In this document: positions 29,536 to 46,051 of the stretch, piece by piece
How the letters are laid out: every line of letters begins with the position of its first letter
Numbering within the stretch: position 1 is the first letter of the stretch
Sequence record: MT366760.1
Strand: one strand, 5' to 3'
DNA length: 64,000 bases
Made by a program: the position numbers and the translations under genes
Notes under the pieces: model-generated
The model's input: only the letters and a program-made list of their open reading frames with translations
Told to the model about the DNA's origin: nothing
Databases searched by the model: none

Positions 29536-29546
29536 CTTTAGTTACC

Positions 29547-31502
29547 TTAATCCGCTGCAATGCCCAATAGTTTCTTACGGTATTCAGCAGAGCTGCCCAT
29601 AAGTTCGTGTAGTTCGCCAAGCTCACTACGAGACGGTGCATTAATCTTGTAGAGTTTACGTGTCTCAGGGTCGAACGCACATTGACGTAGTGCCAACGCA
29701 GACATTTCACCAAGACCTTTCAAGTAGCTTGGTTTTAATTCAACACCCTTCGGAGCTTGTGCACGTATTTCCTTTACAGTATTTCCGAAGTATAGTGTAC
29801 CTTTATGTTCAGCCATGTACTTAGGCAGGATAGCAATGTACACCATACCACGTGTGAACATTTCTGGTAATAGTTCAGCAATCGTAGTCAGTACAAGCGT
29901 GTTGATGTGCCCACCATCAGGGTCAGCATCGGCAGTCAAGATGAGCTTACCACAACGCAAGTCTTTCATTGGATCTTTAGATGACGGGTTGAAACCAATA
30001 GCCGTAAGGATGTTCAATACTTCTTCCGATTCCCAAACTGCATCGCCTTTACCTTGGTCAATGAGTTTAGCAGCGTTAGCGATTTTACCCTTTAGAGCTA
30101 GTGTCTCTTGATAGCGGTATGGTTTGTTCATACGAGCTGCATCAGCAGTACCACCCGCAGAGTCACCCTCCACTGTGAATATTTCACGTTCGTTAACTGG
30201 ACAGTTCTTAACTTCGGTTAGCTTACCAGGGAGCAATGATTTTTGACCACGCTTAGGTTTGAGCTTAGCAGCAACCTTCTTGTTAAGTGCGAACTTGTTC
30301 TTGATTTCACGTAGCTTAGCTGCACGTTCACAAATCTGTTCAGCAATGTCCTTGTGTTTTCTAAAGTACTTAACTAGATAGTTATAAATTTCGTCGTAAC
30401 ACAGTTCTTCGAAACGAGCGTCGGATAAACGTTCTTTTGTTTGGGATGCAAACTTAGGCGTATCAATCTTAAAGTTGATGACACCGACCAAACCTTCGCG
30501 TAAGTCCATTACGTTGTATTCGTGCTTACCCGCGTATTTCTCAAGGGCTTCGGAAATAGCAATGAACGTTTCTTTTAGATGACTACCACCGTTCGAGTTG
30601 TACAAGGTGTTAGTATAACCTTCCACTTTACACCCATCGGCATCGGAGAATGCCAGTAGCATATCAACGTGCTTGGTGCGAAGCAAGATGTGTTCGTCGA
30701 TAATTGGAGTAGCTTTGTTTTCCTTCAACTTAGCTTGAAGGTATTCGGACATACCGTCCTTGTAGCACAATTCAATCTTGTCGAATTGACCTTTCTTACC
30801 ACCGTGAGTTGGATACTCAAGGATGAATTTAACTTTAGAGTTGAAGTAAGCAGACATCTGAGTCCAGTTACGCAAGTCAGCGAGTGGTAAGTTACTACCT
30901 TTATCAAATTGCTTGAGATCCGGTTTGAACCAAATGATTGTACCCTGTTTAGGAACCTTACTACCCATAGCTTTTTCTAAGTCAGTGATTTCTTTCTTAG
31001 TAGCTACGTGAGTATCGCCCGTCATCTTAGCTTTAGCGTATTGGATTACGTACCACTTCTTATTGCGGAACGTATACACATTGAAGAACTCGGATAGTGC
31101 GTTGGTCGCTTTGATACCTACACCGTGTGTACCACGTGAAGAGTCATAGGCACCCGCATCTTTAAACTTCGCACCACCGTGAATATGTGAGGTTACGATT
31201 TCTAGTGCGGTACGCGGGTCATTCTTAGACGTTTTCTCAACAGGGATACCAGTACCATTGTCAATTACGAAACAGTCGTCTGGGATGAATGCACTACCTT
31301 TGTAGGCTCCCGTTACTTTAATGTGACAAAGGTTGTTACGTCCAACCAATGCTTCATCAACACAGTTATCTGCGGGTTCACGGACGATAGTAAACACACC
31401 ATCAGAAGCGGAACCTCCAACATACATTGATATATTATTCTGAATAATTTCAAGACCAGATAGTGCACGGACGGCACTAGCGTCATAACCTTTTTTAGCC
31501 AT
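29547..31502 (-). CDS. gyrB: type IIA topoisomerase subunit B (GyrB/ParE-like)
   Basis: GHKL motifs (E..DNCVDE, DNGTGIP, GTHGVG), TOPRIM VEGDSAGG, LKGK, DADPDG. Confidence 0.95.
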   Translation of the reverse strand: MAKKGYDASAVRALSGLEIIQNNISMYVGGSASDGVFTIVREPADNCVDEALVGRNNLCHIKVTGAYKGSAFIPDDCFVIDNGTGIPVEKTSKNDPRTALEIVTSHIHGGAKFKDAGAYDSSRGTHGVGIKATNALSEFFNVYTFRNKKWYVIQYAKAKMTGDTHVATKKEITDLEKAMGSKVPKQGTIIWFKPDLKQFDKGSNLPLADLRNWTQMSAYFNSKVKFILEYPTHGGKKGQFDKIELCYKDGMSEYLQAKLKENKATPIIDEHILLRTKHVDMLLAFSDADGCKVEGYTNTLYNSNGGSHLKETFIAISEALEKYAGKHEYNVMDLREGLVGVINFKIDTPKFASQTKERLSDARFEELCYDEIYNYLVKYFRKHKDIAEQICERAAKLREIKNKFALNKKVAAKLKPKRGQKSLLPGKLTEVKNCPVNEREIFTVEGDSAGGTADAARMNKPYRYQETLALKGKIANAAKLIDQGKGDAVWESEEVLNILTAIGFNPSSKDPMKDLRCGKLILTADADPDGGHINTLVLTTIAELLPEMFTRGMVYIAILPKYMAEHKGTLYFGNTVKEIRAQAPKGVELKPSYLKGLGEMSALALRQCAFDPETRKLYKINAPSRSELGELHELMGSSAEYRKKLLGIAAD

Positions 31503-32376: not shown

Positions 32377-32544
32377 GATATGTCTCCAATTTGTTTTTTA
32401 ATTGAGGGTGTAATCTTTCTGTAGTGGTTGGTCAGTGGGAGCTGATCTTGCTACCCACTTTCCGTTGCACCACTACTTTACATTTTTATTCCAAAAGAAC
32501 TCAAAATTAATTTAAAAGACCTTTTGGAGTACTGATACTACTTA

Positions 32545-32551
32545 TTTACAG
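32545..32551 (-). promoter_or_regulatory. CTGTAAA motif
   Basis: Immediately after the GNAT stop, upstream of the structured leader of 31894..32376. Confidence 0.5.
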
Positions 32552-32553
32552 AT

Positions 32554-33033
32554 TTACTTAGACTTCGATGAACTTTCTTTATAAGTCATCAACCAAGCGT
32601 CACCTTCAGCGTCATACATTGGGCACAAGTGATTCTTAGTAAAGCCAATTGCTTCATAAACACCGATAGCTCTTTCGTTTTTATCGGCGACATAAAGAAC
32701 TGTTAGGGGTGCAAAGGTAATCGCGTATGCAGTAAGTGCGTAACCCAAACCAAGTCCTTCCCAATCTTTATGAATGAATAAGCTTAGTAAGTGAGCACGC
32801 TTCTTCTCTACACGTAGCGTCAACATTGCTACGACTTCACCGAGACCAGTGCGAACCAAGTATAAGTCATCACCCTCTTCAATTGCGTCTTCGAGATAAG
32901 TGATGGAATCGAGTTCGGGGTCTTCACGAAGTGTTCGTAGTTCATGAATATCTTCGCGTGAACGGATAACGTCAACTAAGAAACCATGTTCGTCGTTAGC
33001 GTTACCCAATATTAGAGGAATGGGTTGTTCCAT
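32554..33033 (-). CDS. GNAT acetyltransferase (RimI-like)
   Basis: LFIHKDWEGLGLGYAL (AcCoA motif A), NERAIGVYEAIGF (motif B). Confidence 0.85.
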   Translation of the reverse strand: MEQPIPLILGNANDEHGFLVDVIRSREDIHELRTLREDPELDSITYLEDAIEEGDDLYLVRTGLGEVVAMLTLRVEKKRAHLLSLFIHKDWEGLGLGYALTAYAITFAPLTVLYVADKNERAIGVYEAIGFTKNHLCPMYDAEGDAWLMTYKESSSKSK

Positions 33034-33038
33034 GTGTG

Positions 33039-34187
33039 TTACTCCGCATCTAATAAGAAGGTATGGTCACATTGTTTACCTTCGAAGTTAGTAGCAACTA
33101 GACGTTCATTACCGTTCTCGTCAGTTATTACTTTAGCGTAATCAGGTTGGATAGGCATCTTACCTAAACCACCAATACCATCCAAAATGAATGTAGGCAT
33201 TGCAGGACCTGATATCCAACCGCGCAACTTGTGAATGATTTCAAGAGTGCGATGATAGTTAACTTGAATGTGACTATTACCTGGAGCAGGATCCATAGTG
33301 TATACGTAATAGGGTCTTACACCATGTGACATAAGTTCCATGAATAGTTCTTTCAAGATTACGGGGTCGTCGTTGACACCTTTCCATAGTACGCTTTGGT
33401 TACCAACAGGAATACCGCCACGGGTCAACATTCGAATATGTTTGATGAATAGTGGTGTAATCTCCTTCGGGTGATTTACCTGAATATTAACTAGAGTCAC
33501 ATCGTGCTTGTGCAGGATATCTACTAGCTCTTGGTCAATACGAGTAGGAAGATGTACGGGTAGTCGTGTGCCGATGCGTAGGATCTTTAAGTCTGGACGC
33601 GCTTCACGAATCATACCAAGTATCTTATCCAATTTAGCATTCGGGAACATTAAAGGGTCACCACCGGATAGTAGTACGTCTTCAATGTTCTTGTTTTCAC
33701 GTAACCATTCAACACCGTTACGAATCTGAGTCATATCAATATGAGCATCAGGGTCTAGAACAATACGCTTTCTTGTACAATGACGGCAGAGTGCAGCACA
33801 TATTGTGTTCATAAGGAACAGTACGCGCTGAGGATAACGGTGTGTGATAGAAGTCCCTGGGATTTCCATGTGATGCTCACCTAACTGGTCACCTTCTTCG
33901 TGTGGTGCGATGTGTCGTTCTGCTTCAGTCGGTAGGAACTGTAAGCGGATTGGACAATTAGGGTCATTTTCATCCATCAGTTGAGCAAGGTATGGCGTAA
34001 TTGCCACTTCAGACTCTTGGTAGAATGAATCATCAACACGAGGAACATTATTCATCACTAGCTCTGCGTGTCCGTTTGTTTTAAGTCGGCGGTTATAGAC
34101 CTTTGTCCATGGAGTGTTCTCCACGTCGTAATTCATAAGCTCTTCACGTGTAGCGAAAGGAGCCCCTGTCATTGCAAGTAGTGACAT
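33039..34187 (-). CDS. kamA: lysine 2,3-aminomutase (radical SAM/PLP, KamA/AblA/EpmB family)
   Basis: HRYPQRVL, CAALCRHCTRKR, LLSGGDPL, RIGTR, NQSVLWKGVND, PYYVYTMD, PTFILDGIGGLGK (PLP Lys). Confidence 0.9.
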   Translation of the reverse strand: MSLLAMTGAPFATREELMNYDVENTPWTKVYNRRLKTNGHAELVMNNVPRVDDSFYQESEVAITPYLAQLMDENDPNCPIRLQFLPTEAERHIAPHEEGDQLGEHHMEIPGTSITHRYPQRVLFLMNTICAALCRHCTRKRIVLDPDAHIDMTQIRNGVEWLRENKNIEDVLLSGGDPLMFPNAKLDKILGMIREARPDLKILRIGTRLPVHLPTRIDQELVDILHKHDVTLVNIQVNHPKEITPLFIKHIRMLTRGGIPVGNQSVLWKGVNDDPVILKELFMELMSHGVRPYYVYTMDPAPGNSHIQVNYHRTLEIIHKLRGWISGPAMPTFILDGIGGLGKMPIQPDYAKVITDENGNERLVATNFEGKQCDHTFLLDAE

Positions 34188-34240
34188 TGTTCGTATCCTT
34201 GTTGTGTTAGTGGGGCTGCAATGAGCCCCTTATTATCAAT

Positions 34241-36334
34241 TTACAATAATAGTAGTTTAGGTGCAAACTCGTGATTGTGGTCGAATAGCATACCAATATG
34301 AGGTTCTTCACGGAACGCACCGTACAACACGTTCTGTTGACGTGCTACGTGGATGGCTAGAACGTAAGCATCTTGTGGTGAAGTGTCTGAGTAACCTTGA
34401 CCGATACCGTAACGGGTGTTCGAATCTGCGATTGCGTAGTCAGCACCACAGAATGAAGCAGCATCAATCAAGTCGAAACCACAATCGTCTTCGGAGAAGT
34501 AGTTGAATAGTGATCTTGTTACACAGTAGTCTGCTTCACCACCACCGCAAAGCGGTACGGTATAGATAGACACACCACATGAGAAGCGAGCACGCCATTC
34601 AGGGTCGATGTGTTTCTTAGCTTCTAAGTGTTCGAGTACTACGGGTAATGGACGACCCATCTGACGGGTTAGTGTTGAGTTGTTTGAACAACCCATTCTG
34701 ACCATCCATTCAGTGAAGTAAGGAACGTCATCAACTACCATAAAGCTTGCGTCAATCCAACCGAACAGACCATCTACTTCTTTGTGAAGTGAACGCATCT
34801 TCTCGGCTAGTTCTTCTACGATTGGATAGTTTTGAATCTTGGTATCGTGCAGCGTTGTAGTATCGCCACCTTTACCACCCGTGTCATTGTGCATCAGCTT
34901 ATTAACTTCCCACAAGATACACATTGGTTGTACGTGGTCTTCGTTAATCAGGAAGCTAACGTTGAATTCGTTGTCTCCGCGACCTAGATATTGTTCGATG
35001 AATAGCGCACCACCATTCAAGAGGTTTGGTAATGTTAATTCGAAACCATCTTTATCGAAAATATCAATGAAGTGAGTCTTCAGATATTTAACTGCGATCT
35101 TATCCGTTGGGATACGGTCTTTTTTCGCGTGCCAATCTTCTAGGGACTTGACGACGATTGATGCGGGTACGTTAAAACCAATTGCTTCTGCACATTTGTG
35201 ACCGAATACACGGTTACGTTCCAACGCACGGGCGTCCTGAGTATGGAAGTGAGTCAGGTAGTCGAGTAACGGTGGTACAATTTCTTCGTTGTAGCCCAAC
35301 GTTGAGAAGTATTGACCGCGTTCGTAATCACCTACACGTTCCATCAGCTCGATGAATTCAGGGTCATCAAAGTCTACACAGTTAGGTAGTTCTGATGGTT
35401 CGATGTCGGGGAACAACTCACGTAGTTGGTGCATGTTAACTTGAGGAATGGTAACTAGTTGTACGTCAGCAATACCTTCTGAGGTATTACAATTGTAACG
35501 TGTTGCACTAGTACCACCTGAACCTTCTTCTATTCGAAGGTGGACAATTTTATCGCAGTTGATACCGTCTTCTACCAATAGGCGAGCCTGAGCGATGTAA
35601 TCGTATTGCTTGCGTAGTCGAAGTTTCGGCATGTTCTGGGGTTCACTACGTTCATTAACTTCTGCGTTACCAAGAGGCATCATGAAGTCAACGTATTCAC
35701 GGGAATCTAGACCTTGCCAAATATCAACCCATTCCTGAGTGTCATAAATAGGTCGGGATAGCTTGTAACCCGCAAGTACGAAGTTACTTTGATCTTCGTC
35801 ACTTAAATTAGCAAAGAACAACGTAAACATCCCATCATCTTTTTCAACATGTGCCACATGTGAGATATGTGATGTGAGCATCGGTACAAGTTTGGTCTGC
35901 GCAAATGGAATTGAAGGATACGTTGCTTCATCACGTAGCCCTTGGAGTGTGATAAAGTCAGCAGGTTCCATTGGTCGTAGGTTGTAGAGTGGTGAACCAC
36001 TAGACCAACCAGATATCATTTGCTGCGACTCGTAAATAATAGGGTCACCTGAGTGAACGGTGTAGGGTGCCAGACGTTGTTGGTAGATAGTCGGAAAGTC
36101 TGGGATTGTTGATACCCCACCGAATTGTGCAAAGTGGACTACGCAATCTGATAGCCCATTGTTGTAGATCAAAGTTGTAGGGAACTGAGCTAGGTAGTCC
36201 GATAGCAGTGGGATAAAATAATCACCTCTGACGTAACGACCAGGACTGCTCAAGTAATTCGCTGTTGTCACACGTTTGCCTGTGAAGTCTAATTTCTTCA
36301 CCATGTCAAATAGTGGGTTTAATAATGATTTCAT
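34241..36334 (-). CDS. PurD-like ATP-grasp amide ligase with ~330 aa unknown N-terminal region
   Basis: LERNRVFGH, IAVK, FIEQYLG, EVNKLMHNDTGGKGG, FTEWMVRMG parallel the PurD ATP-grasp motifs. Start moved to 36334 (GAGG RBS). Confidence 0.7.
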   Translation of the reverse strand: MKSLLNPLFDMVKKLDFTGKRVTTANYLSSPGRYVRGDYFIPLLSDYLAQFPTTLIYNNGLSDCVVHFAQFGGVSTIPDFPTIYQQRLAPYTVHSGDPIIYESQQMISGWSSGSPLYNLRPMEPADFITLQGLRDEATYPSIPFAQTKLVPMLTSHISHVAHVEKDDGMFTLFFANLSDEDQSNFVLAGYKLSRPIYDTQEWVDIWQGLDSREYVDFMMPLGNAEVNERSEPQNMPKLRLRKQYDYIAQARLLVEDGINCDKIVHLRIEEGSGGTSATRYNCNTSEGIADVQLVTIPQVNMHQLRELFPDIEPSELPNCVDFDDPEFIELMERVGDYERGQYFSTLGYNEEIVPPLLDYLTHFHTQDARALERNRVFGHKCAEAIGFNVPASIVVKSLEDWHAKKDRIPTDKIAVKYLKTHFIDIFDKDGFELTLPNLLNGGALFIEQYLGRGDNEFNVSFLINEDHVQPMCILWEVNKLMHNDTGGKGGDTTTLHDTKIQNYPIVEELAEKMRSLHKEVDGLFGWIDASFMVVDDVPYFTEWMVRMGCSNNSTLTRQMGRPLPVVLEHLEAKKHIDPEWRARFSCGVSIYTVPLCGGGEADYCVTRSLFNYFSEDDCGFDLIDAASFCGADYAIADSNTRYGIGQGYSDTSPQDAYVLAIHVARQQNVLYGAFREEPHIGMLFDHNHEFAPKLLLL

Positions 36335-36336
36335 AA

Positions 36337-37479
36337 TTATGCCTCGTCGCCTAATACTACGACACTTTCTGGAAGTTCCCAACCGTTTTTCTCTGAGTAG
36401 AGCGGTGGTGTTAAGTAACCTGGGTTTTCACGACACACACAGATTGTCGTGTTCGTGTTATTGTCATTTACAATAAGGCGCTTGTATGTCTCGATACTTT
36501 CACCACCTGACACATTGGTACGGCAAGTTGGGTCAAGATAAAGCACTGGATGTTTTGAGTCTTCAATGTAGTACTTGACCATACTACCTAGCATTAGTGC
36601 GCCTACATTGTGGTGTGACTTATCACGAACATTAGCTTGGAAGAACGCGGTTACTTCTTTGTTTTCCGGATTGAAACGATTGACGAAGGAACCAATGGAA
36701 ATGATTTCATTAGTTTCTTTGTCAGTTACCACACAGAACTGAGTAGTACCCTTAGGCATATTGACGACACATGCCCACGCCCACATGGATTGGAGTAGAG
36801 CGTATTCGAATTCTAAGTAATCGGGGTACGACTTACGTAGTAGTTCGATGGTGCGTTCTTGAAGCGTACGTATATCTAGGAAACCACCACCATTGTATGA
36901 ATGAAGGTTACCGTGGAAGTATTCATCAAAGATATCTACGTGGTATCGGTCTTGGTTAAGTGCTTGACGAACTTTGTAACGGCGCTTCTTAGTCAAGGAT
37001 GCTAGGTACTCGTCGAATGTCTCGTGGTTTAAATTAGCCACGGGACTATTCAACCAAAGTAAGTTCTCTGATTTGTATTCGTGTGCATCAGATAACGTCA
37101 CTGTCTCTGTTGATAGCATGTTGTAGCCGTGAGAACCAAGTACTTCGAGTAGTGCTTTGCATGATTCTTCACAAACCAAGTCAGCTTGTGTGTAAGGTAA
37201 ATATGGATGACATAACACGTGTGATAGTGGTAGTTCCCATTCGGAGTCTTTACGTTCAGTACTGTGGACGAATGGACTAGGATTAAAACCCAAACCCGCT
37301 AAACGTCCCTCAGTAATCATAGTAATAGGAGTGTTAAGGGTAGCACCACAATTGAATTGACGTAGGTACGTGTCAAATGTGGAAATAACTTCACTGTTAA
37401 GTTCTGGAGTAAGTGTTGAGGAATAACCATGAAGTTTACACCAGTTGTATAGGTATTCTGTTATTGATACTGTTTTCAT
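36337..37479 (-). CDS. FemAB-like / Acetyltransf_6 GNAT-fold acyl- or aminoacyl-transferase
   Basis: TFDEYLASLTKKRRYKVRQAL signature; VGALMLGSMVKY. Confidence 0.65.
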   Translation of the reverse strand: MKTVSITEYLYNWCKLHGYSSTLTPELNSEVISTFDTYLRQFNCGATLNTPITMITEGRLAGLGFNPSPFVHSTERKDSEWELPLSHVLCHPYLPYTQADLVCEESCKALLEVLGSHGYNMLSTETVTLSDAHEYKSENLLWLNSPVANLNHETFDEYLASLTKKRRYKVRQALNQDRYHVDIFDEYFHGNLHSYNGGGFLDIRTLQERTIELLRKSYPDYLEFEYALLQSMWAWACVVNMPKGTTQFCVVTDKETNEIISIGSFVNRFNPENKEVTAFFQANVRDKSHHNVGALMLGSMVKYYIEDSKHPVLYLDPTCRTNVSGGESIETYKRLIVNDNNTNTTICVCRENPGYLTPPLYSEKNGWELPESVVVLGDEA

Positions 37480-37487
37480 TTTTAGTC

Positions 37488-38510
37488 CTATAGTGAAGTA
37501 CGGTCTTTGTTGTAACCGTGGTCACAAGCTTCAGGGATTAAGTCAAGTAGTTGTTGTGGGATGTCATTGTTGAATTGAATACCCTTATGGTATTTCTCCT
37601 CTTCACACCACATGCGCTTCCAATCATAGTAACCTACACCAAAGTTGTAGTATTTACAACCAAGTGCCTTAGCCAATAAGTATCCGTGGTAGAGTAGTAC
37701 GTTACCAATGTTGTTACCGACAGTACGGCGCGAGAAGTCCCAGTATAATTCTTCACCATTATCAGTTACGGAAAATACGGCGAGACCTGAACAGTCGCCT
37801 AGGTCAATTTCAGCAGTTATCCAACGGTCGAAATTGAATCCAGTGAAGAAGTTTAGGAAAAGTAATTGATCTTCGGATACTGTGTGATGTTTACCCGTAC
37901 TTTCCCAATACTTAAGGAAGTCTTCTTTGTAGCGTTCACAATCTGCGGCAATTTCATCAGTGTGATGTGGATGAGATACTTCTACACCTGCATTACGTAA
38001 TGTCGTAACGTCTACGGCATTGTACGCCTTGTTGATAATTGGTAATTGTGGGGTTTCAACAAGCTTCTTGAATGGGCGGTAGAAGCGTTTTAGGTTTTTC
38101 TCTTCAACGTTCATACGTAATGTCATCAGACCATGGTCGTGAGTAGACATTCCGAATTCTTCTAGGTTGAAACCTTTTGTCCAAAAGTTAACGTAGTCGT
38201 CAGCGGAGGACGATTCCCCCATGATGATTGTAATGAATTTAGTCTTGTCGTGCTCTATTTCATCACGAACAATCTGAATAGGCATTACGTTGTTATGGGA
38301 ATCACGCAGGAACACGGGTTCCGTACATCGGTAGTATTTAGAACCTTCGATTTCTTCGGCAGTTAGATAATAAAGACCACTATAACTAGGAATCTTCATA
38401 CCGCCTAAAGAATCAGTGCCGAGTTTATTAGTGTACCATTGTTGATCTACAACGTGACCGAAAGGTTCTTCAGCAATGTCACCATGTTTATTCATTACTT
38501 TAACTAACAT
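37488..38510 (-). CDS. second FemAB-like / Acetyltransf_6 GNAT-fold transferase
   Basis: IGNVLLYHGYLLAKALGCKYYNFGVGYYDWKRMW C-terminal signature. Confidence 0.6.
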   Translation of the reverse strand: MLVKVMNKHGDIAEEPFGHVVDQQWYTNKLGTDSLGGMKIPSYSGLYYLTAEEIEGSKYYRCTEPVFLRDSHNNVMPIQIVRDEIEHDKTKFITIIMGESSSADDYVNFWTKGFNLEEFGMSTHDHGLMTLRMNVEEKNLKRFYRPFKKLVETPQLPIINKAYNAVDVTTLRNAGVEVSHPHHTDEIAADCERYKEDFLKYWESTGKHHTVSEDQLLFLNFFTGFNFDRWITAEIDLGDCSGLAVFSVTDNGEELYWDFSRRTVGNNIGNVLLYHGYLLAKALGCKYYNFGVGYYDWKRMWCEEEKYHKGIQFNNDIPQQLLDLIPEACDHGYNKDRTSL

Positions 38511-39204
38511 TGTCTAACGCTCCCTGACTGTCCGTGCATTGTGAACAAATACCACAAGGTGGGTAGAACTCACAACTAATACGGTTTGAATAATCTTCAC
38601 CAAATGTACGACCTAGTGCAACTACTTGTTCTTTTGACATGTGCATTAGGGGTGTATCAATGACGAATGGTTTAGAGAACGATTGGAATAACAGTTCGTT
38701 CATCGTCTTAACGAAGTGAGGATTAATATCTGCACCGCGAGTTGCACCATTGGTACGAGTACCTACATCTAACTCAGGGTCATTTAGCTGAATACCAAAC
38801 GTCAGTTTATTACAACCTGCGTAGATTGCTTCGATTGATGCTTGTAGGAGGAATGCAGCATTACGACCTTCCAACCAAAACCAGTCAGGATGCTCAGCTA
38901 GTGAGTCACAATCTTCAGTTAGAGAATCACGGGAGAAACCTTGCTTTGGTTTGTACCCTTCATGGAAGACACCGAAGTCTGAGATATCGTGTCCGTTGCG
39001 TACCATGATTTCAGGATACGCAACTTCTAAGACGCGAGTAGAACAACCCCAGAAGTGTGCATAGTACTCCATGATGCGTTGTTGTTCTTCAAATACAGCT
39101 TGTCCATAGTTAACGAGGATAAGCATTTTAAGTTTGCCAGTGGCATTGATTAGGTGACCCGCGACGATGCTGTCAATCCCACCTGAGAATAATAGTGCGT
39201 TCAT
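38500..39204 (-). CDS. divergent QueC-like PP-loop ATP pyrophosphatase
   Basis: LLFSGGIDS, NYGQ, EGRNAAFL, TPLMHMSKEQVV, C-x5-CGICSQC; lacks the YPDC motif. Confidence 0.8.
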   Translation of the reverse strand: MNALLFSGGIDSIVAGHLINATGKLKMLILVNYGQAVFEEQQRIMEYYAHFWGCSTRVLEVAYPEIMVRNGHDISDFGVFHEGYKPKQGFSRDSLTEDCDSLAEHPDWFWLEGRNAAFLLQASIEAIYAGCNKLTFGIQLNDPELDVGTRTNGATRGADINPHFVKTMNELLFQSFSKPFVIDTPLMHMSKEQVVALGRTFGEDYSNRISCEFYPPCGICSQCTDSQGALDNVS

Positions 39205-39234
39205 TATAGTGCTCCTTTAGTTCACTATATTTAT

Positions 39235-39241
39235 TTTACAG
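39235..39241 (-). promoter_or_regulatory. CTGTAAA motif
   Basis: Directly after the queC terminator, 31 nt before the QueC-like ATG (AAGGAG RBS). Confidence 0.55.
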
Positions 39242-39244
39242 AAT

Positions 39245-39273
39245 AAAAATGGGCAGCAAGAGCCACCCATTTT
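39245..39273 (-). terminator. intrinsic terminator after queC
   Basis: AAAATGGGTGGC-TCTT-GCTGCCCATTTTT on the minus strand. Confidence 0.65.
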
Positions 39274-39283
39274 AAATTAGCGT

Positions 39284-40090
39284 TTAGCAGTCTTCTGGAC
39301 TAACGAATTCACTGTCAGACCCACCTTCAACTACCCACTGGTAGCGAGCACGTGCAGGGTCATCAATACCCGCTTCATCAAAACCACGCTTACGTAACAA
39401 GCAGCTATGACAAGAGCCACAACCTAGAACAACGTTACCGTTTTCACCACGAGTGAAATCTTTGCCGTTGTAACAGGTATGGGTAAAGCTGATAGCTTCC
39501 ATACATTCATCACCTAGCTCTTGTGCAAGTTCGACAGTAGCCTTCTTAGACAAGTGCATTAGTGGGGTTGTGATTTTAATCAAGTGATCTTCACCGAAGT
39601 CTTCTTCAAGGAACAATGCTGCATTAGTAGCTGCCTGTAACTTGTCGATGAAAACTTGGCGGCAATCTGGGTAACCACCGAAATCTTCTTCACAAACACC
39701 GGTAACAATGTGACGCAGACGATGTACGTAAGCACGGTTGCTAGCAATCGTAAGGAATACTAAGTTACGTGATGGAACAAATGTATTTTCCAAACCACCA
39801 GGGAGTGAGTCAGCATCTGCATATTGCTCAACCTTTTCGTTGCGGTTAGTCAGTGGGCTTGTACCCTGTAGGATATCGTGACCCAAAGCGATGATCTCAA
39901 ACGGAACTTGCGCACGGTCTGCAATTTTACGAGCCAATATTGTTTCAGTGATATGGCGTTGACCATAGTTGAAACAGATAGCACGAACGTTCTCACGACC
40001 ATATTCACGAATTGCCCAATGTAGACAAGTCGTTGAGTCTTGTCCGCCTGATAGTACAACGACTGCACCTTCTTTCATTTCATTGCTCAT
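39284..40090 (-). CDS. queC: 7-cyano-7-deazaguanine (preQ0) synthase
   Basis: VVVLSGGQDSTTCL, FNYGQRH, TFVPSRN, GGYPDCR, PLMHLSK, THTCYNG, GCGSCHSCLLRKRGF. Confidence 0.95.
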   Translation of the reverse strand: MSNEMKEGAVVVLSGGQDSTTCLHWAIREYGRENVRAICFNYGQRHITETILARKIADRAQVPFEIIALGHDILQGTSPLTNRNEKVEQYADADSLPGGLENTFVPSRNLVFLTIASNRAYVHRLRHIVTGVCEEDFGGYPDCRQVFIDKLQAATNAALFLEEDFGEDHLIKITTPLMHLSKKATVELAQELGDECMEAISFTHTCYNGKDFTRGENGNVVLGCGSCHSCLLRKRGFDEAGIDDPARARYQWVVEGGSDSEFVSPEDC

Positions 40091-40101
40091 TTTGTATTCC
40101 C

Positions 40102-41109
40102 TTACTGTTCGATGTGGCTTAGGTCGTCTTCTTCGTCTTCTTCATCTTCTTCGCGGATTTCAAGTAACGCGTTACGGAGTGAACAGATTAGAGACGTGCT
40201 GCTTAGATTTAGGTAGTCTGAATAGAACTTAACTTCATTCACGAACTTAACCTGTGGAATGATACCGCCTGCCCATAGGTTGTTATGTGTTAGTTCGTCA
40301 AACGCTGCTTTAATCGCTAGGTTATAGAAGTCACAGTAAACAACAATAGTATCATGTTCATGTTTAGAGAAGTAATCAACAAAGGTCTTTTTCAGACGCC
40401 ATTCGTACGGGATACCCGAATCATAGTGTGGCATAATAGCCCAAAGATCTTGAGGTACGATACCCAGTACGCCAGTCGCATTCGCAATGTAAGTATCTGA
40501 AGAACAACCAGTTGCTTCAAGGCAGTCAATAACTGCTGAGTGCATTGGTGCAGGGTACGGTTTGTCGGGTGCGCATGGAACAAGAACCAAATTACGTTTG
40601 GTTGGTGTATAATCGTCAAGAGTTTCGAAGTAATCCAAAACTTCTTTACGATGGAATGAACCATTGTTAGTAATGATGAACTCTTTACGCTCATGTTGTA
40701 GGTTCTTAGTGAGTTGTGGAAGTTTGGTCTCCCACTGCATATCACTTTTCCATAGTGCGTCCACCAACTCTGGGCGGAATCCACACACAACTTCGATAGA
40801 GGTACGGTCTAGGAATGGATAACGGCAGAACTGAGTTGACTTGTCTACGTTAAGTAAACGAGAAACTTGTTCGTCGTGCTCAAAGTGAACTTGAGGTGTA
40901 CTACAATCCGCACCTAAATAGTTAAGTAGTGGAACCCAAGAAGCGGGTGGTCGAGTAACCGTCCACGGCTCCGAAGACTCTGCTACCACTTTGAAGATAT
41001 CTAGGTATGAACCATAGCGATCTTCGTATCGACCACCCGATGGCATTTGGGATAAGTCGATGTGACGGTCTTCTTTATCAATGACCGTTTCTGAGGAGTT
41101 TACTGTCAT
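40102..41109 (-). CDS. archaeosine synthase ArcS/TgtA2 core (DUF5591)-like protein
   Basis: RKEVLDYF..YTPTKRNLVLVPCAPDKPY..H and GVLGIVPQDL..PHYD match the recalled ArcS core motifs PCSxxKPY and LGLVPREL..HYD. Confidence 0.7.
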   Translation of the reverse strand: MTVNSSETVIDKEDRHIDLSQMPSGGRYEDRYGSYLDIFKVVAESSEPWTVTRPPASWVPLLNYLGADCSTPQVHFEHDEQVSRLLNVDKSTQFCRYPFLDRTSIEVVCGFRPELVDALWKSDMQWETKLPQLTKNLQHERKEFIITNNGSFHRKEVLDYFETLDDYTPTKRNLVLVPCAPDKPYPAPMHSAVIDCLEATGCSSDTYIANATGVLGIVPQDLWAIMPHYDSGIPYEWRLKKTFVDYFSKHEHDTIVVYCDFYNLAIKAAFDELTHNNLWAGGIIPQVKFVNEVKFYSDYLNLSSTSLICSLRNALLEIREEDEEDEEDDLSHIEQ

Positions 41110-41160
41110 AGTAGTGTTTTCCTATAGTGGTATTTTGGTGGGTGGAATTACCCACCGCAA

Positions 41161-42483
41161 TTAGTTTACAGAATAATGTGAGTATGTTTCTTCCCACGCT
41201 AAAAATTTATTTATTCCCCTTAGAAATAGTATTACGGTGATGTCACCGATACCTTTCTTATTCATAAGCCTATTATACATCTGACCACGTGTAAGGGAAG
41301 CGGGTTCATCACCTAGGTCTTTGAATATCTGAGTGAGTTTAGCGGGTGGGATGGTAGCTCCCTCTTGTGTGACGAAAGCACCAGACACAAGTGCACGCTG
41401 TGTTAATGTCAGCCTTCTAACTGAGTTTTGGAGTGCGTTGTAGAGTATACGAATTGTCGTAGTACCAAAGCCGTTTAGCTTAGCTAAGTCTTCTTCGGTG
41501 GCATCCATTAAAGCAAAGATGTCACTATATTTACGTGATATTTCACTAACCTTGGCATCAGAAATGTTACGTATCGAAAGCACGGAGGATAGTGCGTAAT
41601 TTAAATGGGCTTTTTTCCTACCGTCACAGTCTAAGTTATAGCAGAACAGTCGATGGTCATCTTCAAATATGTCACCACGGCACGACGGACACTTCTTAAG
41701 ATTCTCGGTTGCGTGTGGTGAGTGATATACCTTTTCTATTGACGGTGGTAAGTTCTTAGGTTTGTTAACGTTCAGCATGATTGCTGTACCAACACCAACA
41801 CCAAGGTCATGAAGCACCTTGCATGATTGCAGTGGTATGTTGCTGTAGGACGTATGATTAGTCGTCAGCTTTTCTATTTCCAAGGTTGGTCGGATTTCAC
41901 CAGTACGCTGAACCTTATAACGAATGTGGGTTACGACAGTTACTAGATGTGTCTTATCTTTCTTCTTCCAGTACCAATAGAAATTACCATTAGCGACGAC
42001 CACACCCTTGCGTGCTTTGACGTTCACCAATACATCTTTTAGTTTTGAACTGGAAACGGAACAACGCAGGGGTGATAAATGGTCAGCGGGGATGAAGCCA
42101 TCCTTAACTGCTGAAAGTTCATTACTATGCAGGAATATGAAGTCAGTATCTCCAGATTTCAAACCGCGCATAACCTCTTTAGGTTTAGAAGCACTTATCG
42201 GGTTCACTATCTGAGTAGTTAGGATTCCCAACACTTGTCCTTTTGGATGCGCAATGCGGTTGGGGATAAGACCGTTATCAACTATTCTATGGAAGTCTAT
42301 GGCTTTGAGTCTATTGTATTTCTTGTGGTCGTAAGCTATCCAAGCACCAATAGGTGTGTGTGCTTCATACACCACTTTAATAGGTACACCGCTCAACCCA
42401 GGATATACATGATAATGAACCACCTTAGACTTTTCTAATTCGCGTTGGTGGTTCTTATTGAATTTCTTAATTTGAGAGTTCAT
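41161..42483 (-). CDS. catalytically degenerate NAD-ligase paralogue (OB fold, C4 Zn finger, HhH)
   Basis: VQRTGEIRP, CPSC..FCYN.DC, HhH GFGTTT; KxDG region reads PGLSGVP. Start moved to 42483 (GGAGG RBS). Confidence 0.7.
   Translation of the reverse strand: MNSQIKKFNKNHQRELEKSKVVHYHVYPGLSGVPIKVVYEAHTPIGAWIAYDHKKYNRLKAIDFHRIVDNGLIPNRIAHPKGQVLGILTTQIVNPISASKPKEVMRGLKSGDTDFIFLHSNELSAVKDGFIPADHLSPLRCSVSSSKLKDVLVNVKARKGVVVANGNFYWYWKKKDKTHLVTVVTHIRYKVQRTGEIRPTLEIEKLTTNHTSYSNIPLQSCKVLHDLGVGVGTAIMLNVNKPKNLPPSIEKVYHSPHATENLKKCPSCRGDIFEDDHRLFCYNLDCDGRKKAHLNYALSSVLSIRNISDAKVSEISRKYSDIFALMDATEEDLAKLNGFGTTTIRILYNALQNSVRRLTLTQRALVSGAFVTQEGATIPPAKLTQIFKDLGDEPASLTRGQMYNRLMNKKGIGDITVILFLRGINKFLAWEETYSHYSVN
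41165..41171 (-). promoter_or_regulatory. CTGTAAA motif
   Basis: In the last codons of 41161..42483, 56 nt before the ArcS-like ATG. Confidence 0.45.
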
Positions 42484-42922
42484 GGAATACTTCCTCCCAT
42501 GTCCCGACGTTACCACGATGGATAAGTACACCTAGACGGAATTCAAGTGTTGCACGTTCCAAGTCTTGGCGGATTAGTTCTTCTATGTTCATACCATCAG
42601 GTAGTCTACGGTTGACGACTTCAACGTCTAAGTCTTCTTCGACAGCTTTCCACATAAAGTAGGATGCTAGGAAGTTGCGAACCAATGTAGGTCGGGTATG
42701 TGTTGTGAAAGTAGACTTAGGCTTCATTAAGTCTCGGGCTTTACTGAGGTACTGCGGAAGTAGCTTACCGGCTACATGTAATTTGTCACGGTCTGTATTG
42801 ACCAATGCTTCTAGGAAACCGAAGTCTCCTTCATCCGCTAGCTTTTCAACTAACGAGATATCAACTGTTGACTTTACATAGGTGAAAGTTTCCTCAGCAA
42901 GAGCGACTATGGTTTTGTCCAT
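42467..42922 (-). CDS. hypothetical protein
   Basis: AGGA RBS; CTGTAAA at 42974-42980 upstream. Confidence 0.65.
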   Translation of the reverse strand: MDKTIVALAEETFTYVKSTVDISLVEKLADEGDFGFLEALVNTDRDKLHVAGKLLPQYLSKARDLMKPKSTFTTHTRPTLVRNFLASYFMWKAVEEDLDVEVVNRRLPDGMNIEELIRQDLERATLEFRLGVLIHRGNVGTWEEVFHELSN

Positions 42923-43002
42923 ATTTATCGTCCTCTACTAATTATAGTTGTGATAGTTATTTCATACTATTACTTTACAGAGTCTCTACTAGGAGGTTCA
43001 TT

Positions 43003-43587
43003 ATGAATCACTCTAAAGAACATTTACTTGATATCTCGACTAATCGTACGATTAAGGTCATTGCCGCTTTTGATGAAGAGGGTGCGTTGGGCTTTAGACA
43101 TAAACTGCTCTATCGTATACCGGATGACTTGCGTAGATTCAAGGAGCTCACTAATGGGCATTGGTTAATCATGGGTCGCAAGACCTACGAATCGTTAGAA
43201 GAAGGATTCTTAAGAGGACGAAACATTATTGTGGTAACCAGTAAACGTGGTTACTACCTACCACTAGTTACCGACGAGGGTTCATCAGTTCAGCTTGCGG
43301 CTTCATATGAGGATGCCGTTGTTATGTTTGATGAATTAGCTAGTGAAGATCAGATTCTTTGGGTTGCGGGTGGTGAGTCGATTTATCGGCAAGCACTACG
43401 TAGCCCACGTGTCAAGTTAAGTGGCTATGAGATAACTCTCATCTATGAGTCAGCTATTAACTTTGATGCAATGTTCCCAGAAAACAGAGAAGGTGACTTG
43501 AATGATATGGAGCTTTACGAATGTCAGTTTTCTCGACCAATGCAACATGGTGATACGTGGTTCGAATTTGCTAGTTTGACCTTGTAG
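43003..43587 (+). CDS. folA: dihydrofolate reductase
   Basis: IAAFDEEGALG, DDLRRFKELT, IMGRKTYES, GRNIIVVT, VAGGESIY, FDAMFP. Confidence 0.95.
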   Translation: MNHSKEHLLDISTNRTIKVIAAFDEEGALGFRHKLLYRIPDDLRRFKELTNGHWLIMGRKTYESLEEGFLRGRNIIVVTSKRGYYLPLVTDEGSSVQLAASYEDAVVMFDELASEDQILWVAGGESIYRQALRSPRVKLSGYEITLIYESAINFDAMFPENREGDLNDMELYECQFSRPMQHGDTWFEFASLTL

Positions 43588-43595
43588 AGCTATTT

Positions 43596-43628
43596 AAACC
43601 CTGTGTACTTACGTGCATGGGGTTTTTT
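43596..43628 (+). terminator. intrinsic terminator
   Basis: AAACCCTGTGTAC/GTGCATGGGGTTT stem plus T-tract; followed at once by CTGTAAA (43632-43638). Confidence 0.7.
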
Positions 43629-43673
43629 ATTCTGTAAAGTTGGTGTAGTTTACCCATCATTAAAGACAAGAAG

Positions 43674-45170
43674 ATGACTAAGATTAAATTGTCCAAGTAC
43701 CAGAAGGACGTAAAGAAACATGTGAAAAAGCGCATGTTTAAAAAGAAGAAGCTTAGTAACTTGGTTGTTCAAGCGTGTGCGGGTTCTGGTAAGTCATTTA
43801 CTCTTTGGAATGTCGTTGACGACTTAGTAAGGGCTCACCCGTCCAAAACAATCAAGTTCTTAGCGTTCAACACTGAAATTGCTAAAGAAGGTAACGCTAA
43901 ACTAAAAGAACTAGGTTATGACAATGTAGAGGTCATGACTATCCATAGTTTTGGTTTATCATTGATTCGTGAACTATGGAAAGAGCCACCGTCGATTGAC
44001 CAATCTAAGGTTTGGCGTTATTTAACACACAAGAATCTAGGGAAGAATCTAGGTCACTTTGCATTTACTCTAAATAAGATACGTGATTTAGGTATCACGG
44101 AAACCCGACCTAAGAAACTTAAGAAGTTACTTAAGGATGAGTGGTGTGATTTCCTAAACATTGATTCACCAATGGGTTCTTCAGTATTGAAAAACATAGA
44201 TGTACTTTGTGATATGCTGAATGAACTTGATAGGGATTTCAAACACATTGACTTCAATGATATGTGTAGATACCCGATTATCCATGACCTAGTCAAGCGT
44301 GTTAAACATCTAATACCTGACATACTACTGATAGACGAAGTCCAAGATCTCAACGGTTATCAAATTGGTATGGTTAGTAAGATGTTAGAAGCTAAACCAC
44401 ACATGAGGGTTATGGCGGTTGGTGATGATTGGCAGGCTATATACGGATTCAGGGGTGCTATTGATAGTATGAGTAAAGTTAAATCTTTACTTGACGCAGA
44501 AGAATTACCTTTGTCTACAACGTACCGTACTCGAAGTAAAATTGTTGATTGGATTAAACAACATCTGGGTGGTGCCGACCACTTGGAAGCTGAGAGGGAG
44601 GGTGGTGAGGTTTTCGAAGTCAATGGTCTTGAGTCGGATACTTATGCAGTTAAGTTCATGATGCACCATAAGATTGGTATGGTGGTCAGCCCGAAAAACA
44701 AACACCTTATTCGAATTGCTATCACTCTCATTGATAACGAAGTTGACTTCACTATGAGGAAGTCGGGTGTGTTAGAAGAAGTGCGGTTGCTAATTAAAAA
44801 ACAGGATTCTAAAACAATGACTGGTCTTCGTAAAGGTCTAGGTCTGGAGAAAAAGAATGCTCCGAGTGGTATGAAGGGTAGGGAAATCAAAGACTTAGTG
44901 GAAACTACGCTGTTCTTCTTAAACCACTTTTCATTCGCAACGCCCCTTGATGCCTTGAGTAAAATCACTAGTCTTAAGCGTAGGGATAGGGGTAGGGGTA
45001 TCCAACTACACACGGGGCATTCTTCAAAAGGGTTAGAAGCTCCGGTTGTCGCGGTCATTGAGGACTTCTTCAAAATGGAAGGTGGTCAGAAAAAGAATCT
45101 TAAGTATGTATCTTACACTAGGGCTATCGACAAATTAATTGTTATAGAACCTTATTCAGGAGGAAAGTAA
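43674..45170 (+). CDS. UvrD/Rep-like SF1 helicase
   Basis: ACAGSGKS, IDEVQD, VGDDWQAIYGFRGA, TTYR, HSSKGLE, YVSYTRA. Confidence 0.9.
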   Translation: MTKIKLSKYQKDVKKHVKKRMFKKKKLSNLVVQACAGSGKSFTLWNVVDDLVRAHPSKTIKFLAFNTEIAKEGNAKLKELGYDNVEVMTIHSFGLSLIRELWKEPPSIDQSKVWRYLTHKNLGKNLGHFAFTLNKIRDLGITETRPKKLKKLLKDEWCDFLNIDSPMGSSVLKNIDVLCDMLNELDRDFKHIDFNDMCRYPIIHDLVKRVKHLIPDILLIDEVQDLNGYQIGMVSKMLEAKPHMRVMAVGDDWQAIYGFRGAIDSMSKVKSLLDAEELPLSTTYRTRSKIVDWIKQHLGGADHLEAEREGGEVFEVNGLESDTYAVKFMMHHKIGMVVSPKNKHLIRIAITLIDNEVDFTMRKSGVLEEVRLLIKKQDSKTMTGLRKGLGLEKKNAPSGMKGREIKDLVETTLFFLNHFSFATPLDALSKITSLKRRDRGRGIQLHTGHSSKGLEAPVVAVIEDFFKMEGGQKKNLKYVSYTRAIDKLIVIEPYSGGK

Positions 45171-45171
45171 A

Positions 45172-45645
45172 ATGAAATTAACAGCAGAAGAAGCTATGTT
45201 CTTACGAACGCATATAGTTAAACCAGAAGGTAAGACAATGCGTGATGTTGCGTCTGCCATATGTGAAATATCAATTGAACCCGTAAACAGTTATCCATCA
45301 GAATATCGTGATGCAGTCAGTGGATTGCTAGAGAAGTTCAAAAGTAACTTTGAATCACTGAGGGGAGAAACATGTGCGAGTTTTACTGACGTCGAAGACT
45401 ATAAGTTCGATATATTCCAAGGTCGCCACGATGGATCTTCAGCTATCTGTATGTTGGTATGTCAACAATGTACTATTTCACCGAGTGGTTTCACATACAC
45501 ATATGGGATACAATGTGAGCGATATACGAAACCTAAACAGGATCCAATCTTACAGATAAATACTAAAGTGTCTATTCAAAGTCATACACCAGTGATAGAT
45601 ACTTTCCGTTTGCCAAATCTAAGGCAAGAAGTTATGTTTTTCTAG
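45172..45645 (+). CDS. hypothetical protein
   Basis: AGGAGG RBS; coupled to the helicase stop. Confidence 0.65.
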   Translation: MKLTAEEAMFLRTHIVKPEGKTMRDVASAICEISIEPVNSYPSEYRDAVSGLLEKFKSNFESLRGETCASFTDVEDYKFDIFQGRHDGSSAICMLVCQQCTISPSGFTYTYGIQCERYTKPKQDPILQINTKVSIQSHTPVIDTFRLPNLRQEVMFF

Positions 45646-45647
45646 AT

Positions 45648-45675
45648 AAAAGCCATCCTTAGGGGTGGCTTTTTT
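45648..45675 (+). terminator. intrinsic terminator
   Basis: AAAAGCCATCC-TTAG-GGGTGGCTTTTTT. Confidence 0.75.
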
Positions 45676-45730
45676 ATCTCTAACCTAATTTAAATTGCAA
45701 TATTGCACAGAACAAAATGAGGACAGAGAT

Positions 45731-46015
45731 ATGCCAATGATGGATGTTCCACAAATGAACAAGAAGCTTAAGGAGCTTAAGAAGATTGCTAAGAACGCTA
45801 CGGGTGTCCGTAAAGATCCGGCAATTAAGAAAGTTAAGTCGATGGAAGCCAAAATCAAGAAGGCTCGTTCGATGAAAGCTAAAGAAGGAGCGAAGGGTCG
45901 CAAGAAGATGGCTAAAGCAGGTGTCAGTTGCGACCGCAAGCGCGTAGAGGCTGCACTCAAGGGTTGGAAGACTCGCCGCAAACTCCACGGAAAATCAGGT
46001 TGTAAAAATAAGTAA
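45731..46015 (+). CDS. small Lys/Ala-rich basic protein (histone H1-like composition)
   Basis: GAGGA RBS before the ATG at 45731; monocistronic between two terminators. Confidence 0.7.
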   Translation: MPMMDVPQMNKKLKELKKIAKNATGVRKDPAIKKVKSMEAKIKKARSMKAKEGAKGRKKMAKAGVSCDRKRVEAALKGWKTRRKLHGKSGCKNK

Positions 46016-46028
46016 CAGATCACAAATT

Positions 46029-46051
46029 ACCGCCTTTCGGGGCGGTTTTTT
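46029..46051 (+). terminator. intrinsic terminator
   Basis: ACCGCC stem, TTCG loop, GGCGGT, T6. Confidence 0.85.

Follow-up and report, generated by a model that had tools for sequence, protein, structure and literature searches.

Why should a bacteriophage that encodes a complete synthase of 7-cyano-7-deazaguanine (preQ0), QueC, carry another gene of the same type directly downstream of it? The question is raised by the marine Vibrio phage vB_VcorM_GR7B (MT366760.1, 207,758 bp; host Vibrio coralliilyticus RE98), from which we analyzed a stretch of 64,000 nucleotides, hereafter the window, corresponding by match coordinates approximately to MT366760.1 62001-126000; window bases 32500-42600 match this record at 100% identity. 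The gene in question, GR7B_00117, encodes a predicted PP-loop ATP pyrophosphatase with a zinc ribbon, here called QueC-L; its neighbor GR7B_00118 is a canonical queC, and the sister phage GR11A has the same gene string. Our analysis suggests that QueC-L, a protein of ordinary fold and unusual role whose function is read here from the sequence, probably acts as a deazaguanine-amine ligase, with which an uncharacterized hypermodification pathway would begin.

A second, divergent QueC-type protein

The open reading frame of QueC-L starts with ATG, a few bases downstream of a Shine-Dalgarno sequence (AAAGGAG), and its product matches the Pfam QueC profile PF06508 over the whole length (residues 4-231, 63.5 bits). 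The score with the QueC equivalog profile TIGR00364 is only 52.3 bits, far below the cut-off of 150.3, and the GenBank name "7-cyano-7-deazaguanine synthase", judged by this score, is therefore unjustified. The neighboring GR7B_00118, in contrast, scores 204.3 bits with the Pfam profile and 185.1 bits with TIGR00364, above the cut-off, and carries the complete signature of the enzyme: SGGQDS, YGQRHxxE, VPSRN, YPDC, K, CY, and the zinc cysteines. The two proteins are 27% identical. An original prediction made from the sequence letters had described QueC-L as a second, divergent paralog of QueC, and these values bear it out.

To make the published residue numbers usable, QueC of Escherichia coli (from NC_000913) was aligned with both GR7B proteins. 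All motifs that the original prediction listed as retained were located in QueC-L, namely SGGxDS (SGGIDS, residues 7-12), NYGQ (32-35, with Y33 and Q35), RN (within GRN, 113-115), and the four zinc cysteines (C211, C217, C220, and C223), together with SK (190-191). The absence of YPDC, claimed in the same place, was likewise confirmed: GGYPDC of the neighbor aligns with RGADIN of QueC-L, and E. coli Y131-P-D-C corresponds to G-A-D-I, where the aspartate (D159) alone survives. E. coli C188-Y189 corresponds to C211-E212. The motif YxQxHxxE (E. coli 35-42) reads YGQAVFEE, with the tyrosine, glycine, and glutamine kept; across the QueC-L family described below, the position of its histidine (H39) is taken by variable residues and that of its glutamate (E42) is not conserved, a glutamine one residue later being common. 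In VPxRN, valine and proline are replaced by glutamate and glycine. A 28-sequence alignment of the family shows G8, G9, S12, R114, D159, K191, and the four cysteines to be invariant, and S7, D11, and N115 to be kept in at least 90% of the sequences.

Characterized relatives allow these differences to be interpreted. In E. coli QueC, the substitutions Y35A, R99A, Y131A, and Y189A abolish queuosine formation, and Y131F is partly active (Libby et al., 2026, PMC13329287). Cap9 of type IV cyclic-oligonucleotide-based antiphage signaling systems (CBASS; PDB 9NTO) is a QueC-like ligase joining 7-carboxy-7-deazaguanine (CDG) to the N-terminal amine of a protein. In the structure of Cap9 with CdnD, Y115 and R86 stack on either side of the deazaguanine, which D117 reads, and in the published structures generally the counterparts of the conserved residues bind pyrophosphate or sandwich and read the deazaguanine (bioRxiv 10.1101/2025.04.06.647259; PMC13279940). 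According to the alignment, QueC-L retains all known ATP/pyrophosphate-binding residues and two of the three side chains that hold deazaguanine in Cap9 (Arg of RN and Asp of YPDC), and it has lost residues required for preQ0 synthesis (Y131 to Gly and Y189 to Glu). The zinc ribbon, SCEFYPPCGICSQCTD, has the form CE-x4-C-x2-C-x2-C-x-D, two residues shorter than CE-x6-C-x2-C-x2-C-x-D of Cap9. The Cap9 motif H-x4-Y-x-D-C-x3-F is not found in QueC-L, which has Gln139 in place of the histidine, 19 residues from there to the aspartate, and neither the tyrosine nor the cysteine.

When 1.84 billion cluster representatives were scanned in full with HMMER, 247 matched at E <= 1e-3; at limits of 1e-10 and 1e-30, there were 39 and 12 matches, respectively. 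Motif positions were read in the best 150 of the 247; in 55 of these the aromatic residue of YPDC is gone and the aspartate is kept, as in QueC-L. The rest have Y/F-x-D-C; some of them are Cap9-like, with about 185 aa, SCE, and G-x-H, and the others are canonical, with SCY. The tripeptide SCE, which includes the position of Glu212, occurs in QueC-L, in most of its family, and in Cap9-like proteins, while canonical QueCs have SCY or TCY. The 55 representatives have in common G-x-Q (position 139), about 13 inserted residues, x-x-D lacking the aromatic residue, and S-C-E with a short C-x5-C ribbon after it. As a signature of the family, whose members are 225-250 aa long, we propose SGGxDS, YGQ, GRN, G-x-Q, the insert with x-x-D, K, and SCE-x4-CGxCxQC, along with a complete QueC co-encoded in phage-like DNA; QueC-L possesses all of these features.

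The profile of the QueC-L family gives 294 bits with the window protein, and the profile of co-resident QueCs gives 50, the values for the neighboring QueC being 55 and 341 bits, respectively. Since both GR7B proteins are rows in their own profiles, which inflates their own scores, better evidence of separateness comes from members outside the profile, with 136-215 bits to the QueC-L family profile versus 40-86 to that of QueC. In a FastTree phylogeny of 158 QueC-type sequences, the sequences with the signature cluster together (9 changes versus 45 after shuffling), with deep branches poorly supported, and no sister group of QueC-L is claimed from this tree. A search with a nine-sequence alignment revealed just one further family member in IMG/VR (L024). 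The scan of 185,579 prokaryote species genomes with the same alignment, which used one peptide pattern and is weak evidence, revealed no family member: of its 14 matches all but L047 score better to the canonical QueC profile, and no ArcS-core or p340 genes (see below) were found next to them. No close relative outside GR7B and GR11A was found by tblastn in all phage records. A network survey of PF06508 from 2026 covered the ten largest clusters alone, and the QueC-L group is not described there (PMC13329287); our literature search returned nothing on the GR7B cluster and nothing connecting deazaguanine, phage, and aminomutase or ATP-grasp enzymes. Judging from these searches, the QueC-L family is a small, undescribed branch of QueC, found here on phage-like DNA alone.

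The original prediction had proposed structure modeling and comparison of the active site with QueC, Cap9, and QatC as a check. An AlphaFold2 model built on the 28-sequence alignment has a mean predicted local distance difference test (pLDDT) score of 91.7 and dips solely in two loops specific to the family (91-110 and 141-160), which flank the pocket. The model has the QueC fold, the nearest structure being Cap9 (9NTO_B; VIA Z 20.9, root-mean-square deviation 2.1 A over 177 of 181 residues), followed by QueC of Bacillus subtilis (19.9) and Pectobacterium (19.3) and by QatC (15.1); other PP-loop enzymes give Z of about 12. Cap9 is also the best PDB match by sequence (E 1e-6). QueC-L is 92% identical to its GR11A ortholog, with a nonsynonymous rate (dN) of 0.055, a saturated synonymous rate (dS) of 1.22, and dN/dS of 0.045, compared with 0.074 for QueC and 0.127 for the ArcS core, which makes it the best conserved protein of the cluster. 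QueC-L is thus encoded by a real gene that shows no decay and is subject to strong purifying selection, and the model confidently predicts a QueC fold for it.

Predicted reaction of QueC-L

Chances are about even, in our judgment, that QueC-L is a catalytically active PP-loop enzyme that no longer makes the nitrile of preQ0 and joins C7 of a deazaguanine to an amine other than ammonia. Such a non-nitrile, amine-coupling reaction is plausible and would be the most economical reading of the sequence, because the ATP site and the Arg/Asp pair are kept, Y131 and Y189 are lost, and the glutamate is as in Cap9. By analogy, this glutamate, which follows the first zinc cysteine, connects QueC-L with the sole QueC relative that has proven amide-forming chemistry. 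Amide rather than nitrile formation had been proposed in the original prediction together with (beta-)lysine as the amine; the direction is supported by the residues just named, the choice of the acceptor is not (see below).

In the mechanism we propose, QueC-L would bind ATP and a 7-deazaguanine intermediate from the phage's own FolE-QueD-QueE-QueC pathway and would adenylate the C7 carbonyl, acting on the CDG carboxylate or, possibly, on the amide oxygen in 7-amido-7-deazaguanine (ADG). Capture of the activated carbon by an amine other than ammonia would yield a 7-deazaguanine with an N-substituted 7-amido (or amidino) group. In this step, in which the adjacent ArcS-core protein probably takes part, the base would receive a handle, which could be extended by lineage-specific FemX/MprF-like aminoacyl transferases and PurD-like ATP-grasp ligases; GR7B would add an aminomutase making beta-lysine and an acetyltransferase. 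Finally, a divergent tRNA-guanine transglycosylase (TGT)-domain protein of the phage would put the finished base into nucleic acid. The insert of QueC-L, at the site of the partner-binding loop of QatC, may hold the acceptor or a partner protein. We infer the substrate, the acceptor, the order of the steps, and the final target alike.

Several points weigh against this mechanism. First, the stacking tyrosine of Cap9 and QueC is missing, and therefore the base may bind otherwise or the substrate may differ; the same kind of change is seen in QatC, the chemistry of which is still unsettled (PMC13279940). Second, the use of plain CDG leaves the tight link to canonical QueC and the ArcS core unexplained, a link which hints at a substrate downstream of preQ0 or ADG; another possibility is that the two proteins act jointly, QueC-L in activation and the ArcS core in delivering the amine. 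Finally, the sole transglycosylase candidate is very divergent (PF01702, 24.7 bits, below the cut-off), and DNA as the end target is putative. A more specific proposal, which we put forward tentatively and consider doubtful, is that QueC-L and the ArcS core form the committed ligase of a new nucleobase hypermodification, a 7-deazaguanine with an amino-acid or short-peptide chain inserted in phage DNA by a divergent transglycosylase; Fem-like transferases that depend on aminoacyl-tRNA, along with PurD-like ligases, would assemble the chain, in GR7B with beta-lysine.

Known enzymes of the family place QueC-L as follows. With canonical QueC it shares the fold (Z 19-20), SGGxDS, Y-G-Q, R-N, the aspartate of YPDC, the lysine, the four-cysteine zinc site, and a pathway neighborhood of FolE, QueD, QueE, and TGT-like genes. 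It differs in having glycine or a small residue for Tyr131 and glutamate for Tyr189, in not keeping His39 and Glu42, in the first zinc pair (C-x5-C instead of C-x8-C), in the invariant Gln139 and the 13-residue insert before the aspartate, and in occurring in addition to a complete QueC. With Cap9, its best match in both sequence and structure, it shares the glutamate after the first zinc cysteine, the PPCGxCxxCxD ribbon, RN, and the base-reading aspartate, and like Cap9 it would be expected to stop at the amide stage. Cap9, however, keeps the stacking tyrosine (H-x4-Y-x-D-C), is about 185 aa long, and is encoded beside a CD-NTase and the TGT-like Cap10, whereas QueC-L lacks the tyrosine, belongs to a family of longer proteins with two extra loops, and lies in phage preQ0 clusters with QueC, DUF5591, and Fem-like neighbors. 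QatC (QatABCD system; PDB 9Y01/9Y02) resembles QueC-L in the QueC core, the altered Tyr/Asp base-recognition pair, and a loop inserted just before it, but it has long extensions at both the N- and the C-terminal end (absent from QueC-L), Thr/Thr for Tyr/Asp, and the partners QatA, QatB, and QatD, and is the weaker structural match; the PADLOC model of QatC gave no match to QueC-L at the 0.01 limit. Phage Gat-QueC and 'QueC*' are also QueC variants, diverting the pathway from preQ0 to archaeosine (G+) and ADG (PMC6884629, PMC10516641). QueC-L, unlike these, has no glutamine amidotransferase domain and is not the sole QueC of its phage, and phrog_10428, the Gat-QueC family, is matched by the canonical GR7B QueC and not by QueC-L.

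Bacterial immunity has twice recruited QueC-family enzymes for the deazaguanylation of proteins, as Cap9 and QatC. If the proposed reaction is true, QueC-L would add a third, independent recruitment, here by phages. The conserved module of QueC, QueC-L, ArcS core, Fem-like proteins, and PurD-like ligases points to 7-deazaguanines beyond the eight found in phage DNA (PMC10516641); a peptide-bearing base, if real, would make peptidyl-7-deazaguanine known in DNA for the first time and would be the first case of tRNA-dependent aminoacyl transfer in base modification. A real product would add a chemistry of DNA or bases that matters for restriction evasion, and would supply a novel biocatalyst for amide formation.

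Gene contexts and neighboring genes

Features of the GR7B cluster are listed in Table 1.

Table 1. Features of the QueC-L cluster of phage GR7B (window coordinates).
Feature	Coordinates	Strand	Length	Remarks
ArcS core, stand-alone	40102..41109	minus	335 aa	DUF5591, 'ArcS2'-type; PC...DKPY motif
Canonical QueC (GR7B_00118)	39284..40090	minus	268 aa	Directly upstream of QueC-L
Spacer queC/QueC-L	39205..39283	minus	79 nt	Terminator-like hairpin, T-rich tail, second small hairpin
QueC-L (GR7B_00117)	38500..39204	minus	234 aa	PP-loop ATP pyrophosphatase with Zn ribbon
p340	37488..38510	minus	340 aa	Start overlaps QueC-L stop by 11 nt; tandem-GNAT fold
p380	36337..37479	minus	380 aa	Second Fem/Acetyltransf_6-like protein
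p713	34241..36382 (GenBank start 36334)	minus	~700 aa	C-terminal half PurD-like ATP-grasp ligase
KamA family	33039..34187	minus	382 aa	Lysine 2,3-aminomutase-like radical SAM enzyme
GNAT N-acetyltransferase	32554..33033	minus	159 aa	PF00583, 43.1 bits

Thirteen genomic contexts of QueC-L were recovered, all of them phage-like, with terminase, portal, DNA polymerase, ThyX, ribonucleotide reductase, or lysis genes nearby. Ten of them have a complete canonical QueC next to or close to QueC-L, and the remaining three are short contigs of 2-4 kb; the co-resident QueCs have invariant YPDC, VPxRN, and H46 in their alignment. To judge from these contexts, QueC-L never replaces QueC. One contig, a 3-kb metagenomic one, encodes a tandem QueC::QueC-L fusion (P0046, L037:1014-2318, 434 aa), flanked by FolE and a TGT-like gene. 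Of its two domains, the N-terminal one scores higher to canonical QueC (111 versus 90 bits) and the C-terminal one to QueC-L (135 versus 74). The N-terminal domain has GGGLDS and FPDS instead of SGGxDS and YPDC.

The ArcS-core gene of one particular DUF5591 subfamily accompanies QueC-L, usually as an adjacent gene, in GR7B, GR11A, L016, L019, L022, L024, the P0026 contig, and probably L021. In L019 and L022, where QueC is located elsewhere, it directly precedes QueC-L and overlaps its start. The GR7B protein scores 28.2 bits with PF17884 and E 9e-12 with NF040592, and is too divergent to find its counterpart in phage nt-1 by tblastn. Weak S-adenosylmethionine (SAM)-methyltransferase-like genes lie in or beside the ArcS-core/QueC-L module in L019 (5604-6437) and L022 (6612-7184), which suggests further lineage-specific decoration. 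Just upstream of the module in L016 (2900-4987, P0002 contig) there is a 695-aa gene with intein-splicing and LAGLIDADG domains.

Elsewhere in the GR7B genome there are genes for FolE, QueE-like and QueD-like proteins, and a divergent TGT-domain protein. The latter (GR7B_00174; MT366760.1 154971-156587, L009:4972-6588; 538 aa) is the sole TGT-like protein of the phage, covers the last 65 positions of PF01702 alone, and matches no DpdA-type PHROG; it may represent a new transglycosylase subfamily. QueF is absent from both GR7B and GR11A, and hence phage-made preQ1 was rejected as the acceptor amine. SAM decarboxylase-like genes (PF02675) were observed near QueC-L on two unrelated contigs (L019:20290-20595, and directly downstream in L040:1718-2113), a hint that aminopropyl or polyamine units may serve as building blocks in some lineages; as neither GR7B nor GR11A has such a gene, a polyamine acceptor was rejected as a general explanation.

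Genes downstream of QueC-L seem to encode mostly amide-bond enzymes, namely the Fem-like p340 and p380 and PurD-like ligases. No Pfam match was obtained for p340. It falls into the Acetyltransf_6, FemAB_like, and ATE_C clusters of the ESM Atlas, and its AlphaFold2 model, based on four sequences (pLDDT 68.7), has FemX, L-PGS, A-PGS, MprF, and Sbb17 as top Foldseek matches (E 3e-6 to 3e-3, with low TM scores). FemX and MprF represent aminoacyl-tRNA-dependent transferases, and Sbb17 is an aminoacyl-tRNA-dependent peptide synthase. Homologs of p340 follow QueC-L in L016 and L019. By features and structure, p380 is assigned in the ESM Atlas to Acetyltransf_6, FemAB, and LPG_synthase_C, and it shows a weak profile link (E 0.011) to a family of about 290 aa (289, 301, and 288 aa) in L016 and L019; other profile comparisons among p340, p380, and neighbors in other lineages, made with shallow alignments, were mostly insignificant.

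PurD-like ATP-grasp ligases are found in five lineages: p713 in GR7B and GR11A, a 555-aa homolog that follows QueC-L in L024, and a 400-aa family in L016 and L019. The last family matches PurD (1VKZ) at E 4e-5, and p713 matches it weakly at the profile level. The KamA-like protein scores 316.7 bits with TIGR03820, below the cut-off of 525, and 231.8 bits with TIGR00238, above the cut-off of 199.2. Three of the 13 contexts (GR7B, GR11A, and L024) contain an aminomutase, each time with the long, p713-type ligase.

All eight proteins of the GR7B cluster (32554-41109) are acidic, with net charges of -9 to -32, and the flanking ligase-like, helicase, PolA-like, and topoisomerase B proteins (27988-31502, 41161-48622) are strongly basic; this contrast mildly favors chemistry on a free base or nucleotide over chemistry on DNA. 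The "DNA ligase" directly upstream of the cluster (41161-42531, minus strand) shows just the OB-fold and HhH regions of NAD-dependent ligases, below Pfam thresholds, and no Pfam match to an adenylation domain is reported for it.

Alternative reactions and the transcription unit

Other explanations of QueC-L have to be weighed against ligation of a deazaguanine to a non-ammonia amine. We consider it unlikely that QueC-L is an ADG synthase, which would perform the first QueC half-reaction with ammonia and release ADG, like the 'QueC*' of phages with 2'-deoxy-7-amido-7-deazaguanosine (dADG). The loss of residues tied to completing preQ0 synthesis (PMC13329287) would suit such an enzyme, a QueC homolog proposed to stop at ADG is on record (PMC10516641), and the fusion to QueC suggests division of labor on one substrate. 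However, the adjacent complete QueC itself passes through ADG, so that a separate ADG maker seems redundant; the 13-residue insert by the base pocket and the amide-forming neighbors suggest a bulkier acceptor, and the tblastn search of phage records, mentioned above, also speaks against this function.

The product of archaeal ArcS is lysine joined to preQ0. QueC-L could therefore adenylate another carboxylate, for instance the alpha-carboxylate of a lysine that the ArcS core had attached to preQ0, and then amidate or extend it, a possibility to which we give a low probability. It would explain the dependence on canonical QueC and agrees with the tight linkage, often overlap, of QueC-L with DUF5591, as well as with the lost tyrosine and the new pocket loops 91-110 and 141-160, where the model is least confident. 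Yet D159 and R114 are invariant, and their Cap9 counterparts position a deazaguanine with C7 facing the alpha-phosphate of ATP; moreover, ArcS2 of phage nt-1 gives plain 2'-deoxyarchaeosine (dG+) in E. coli (PMC10516641), although the GR7B ArcS core is very divergent from it.

That QueC-L ligates CDG to beta-lysine from the downstream aminomutase, through one of its amino groups, is in our opinion also improbable, and the acceptor named in the original prediction is not supported. The KamA gene lies 4.3 kb downstream of QueC-L in the same gene string of GR7B and GR11A, and 2.8 kb downstream in L024; however, no aminomutase was seen in the 10-20 kb analyzed around QueC-L in L016, L019, and L022, nor on the 12.6-kb P0019 contig. 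Where KamA occurs, it occurs just with the p713-type ATP-grasp ligase. As this ligase accompanies every aminomutase, and ligases of the PurD type activate the carboxylates of amino acids, for which beta-lysine fits better as the acyl donor, the long PurD-like ligase is, by analogy, a more likely user of beta-lysine than QueC-L.

Very unlikely, in our estimate, is the deazaguanylation of a phage or host protein, as performed by Cap9 and probably by QatC, for example in counter-defense. The rank of Cap9 as the best PDB match by both sequence and structure, the common SCE...PPCGxCxxCxD zinc ribbon, and the position of the family insert, where QatC has its partner-binding loop (PMC13279940), would agree with it. 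On the other hand, the neighbors are small-molecule enzymes of the preQ0 pathway, with no CD-NTase, QatB, or conserved Met-Gly N-terminus among them, and the PADLOC model of Cap9 gives 45 bits to QueC-L, no better than the 52 bits to the canonical QueC. Equally remote is the idea that QueC-L is a non-catalytic partner or regulator pairing with QueC, or a redundant second preQ0 synthase, for which one may adduce the existing QueC::QueC-L fusion, the dimeric state of B. subtilis QueC (3BL5), and the GenBank name queC. Invariant or nearly invariant ATP/pyrophosphate residues across about 55 diverged representatives, with the dN/dS given above, would not be expected of a dead subunit, and a redundant synthase is contradicted by the replacement of two residues whose change to alanine is lethal for activity in E. 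coli QueC (PMC13329287) and by an equivalog score of a third of the cut-off.

The original prediction also held that QueC-L heads a second transcription unit. This is plausible for GR7B and GR11A, where the spacer contains a terminator-like hairpin, but no promoter was identified, and the arrangement is not a family trait, because in other lineages the queC or ArcS-core gene overlaps the QueC-L gene. The hairpin (39273-39246, minus strand) has a 12-bp GC-rich stem followed by a T-rich tail (dG -23.3 kcal/mol, z -4.2) and is kept in GR11A (L002 12749-12776), where the loop and three positions of the stem differ, with one pair lost and one G-U in place of A-U. It may serve as a terminator, an attenuator, or a processing site. 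The second, small hairpin of the spacer covers the ribosome-binding site of QueC-L.

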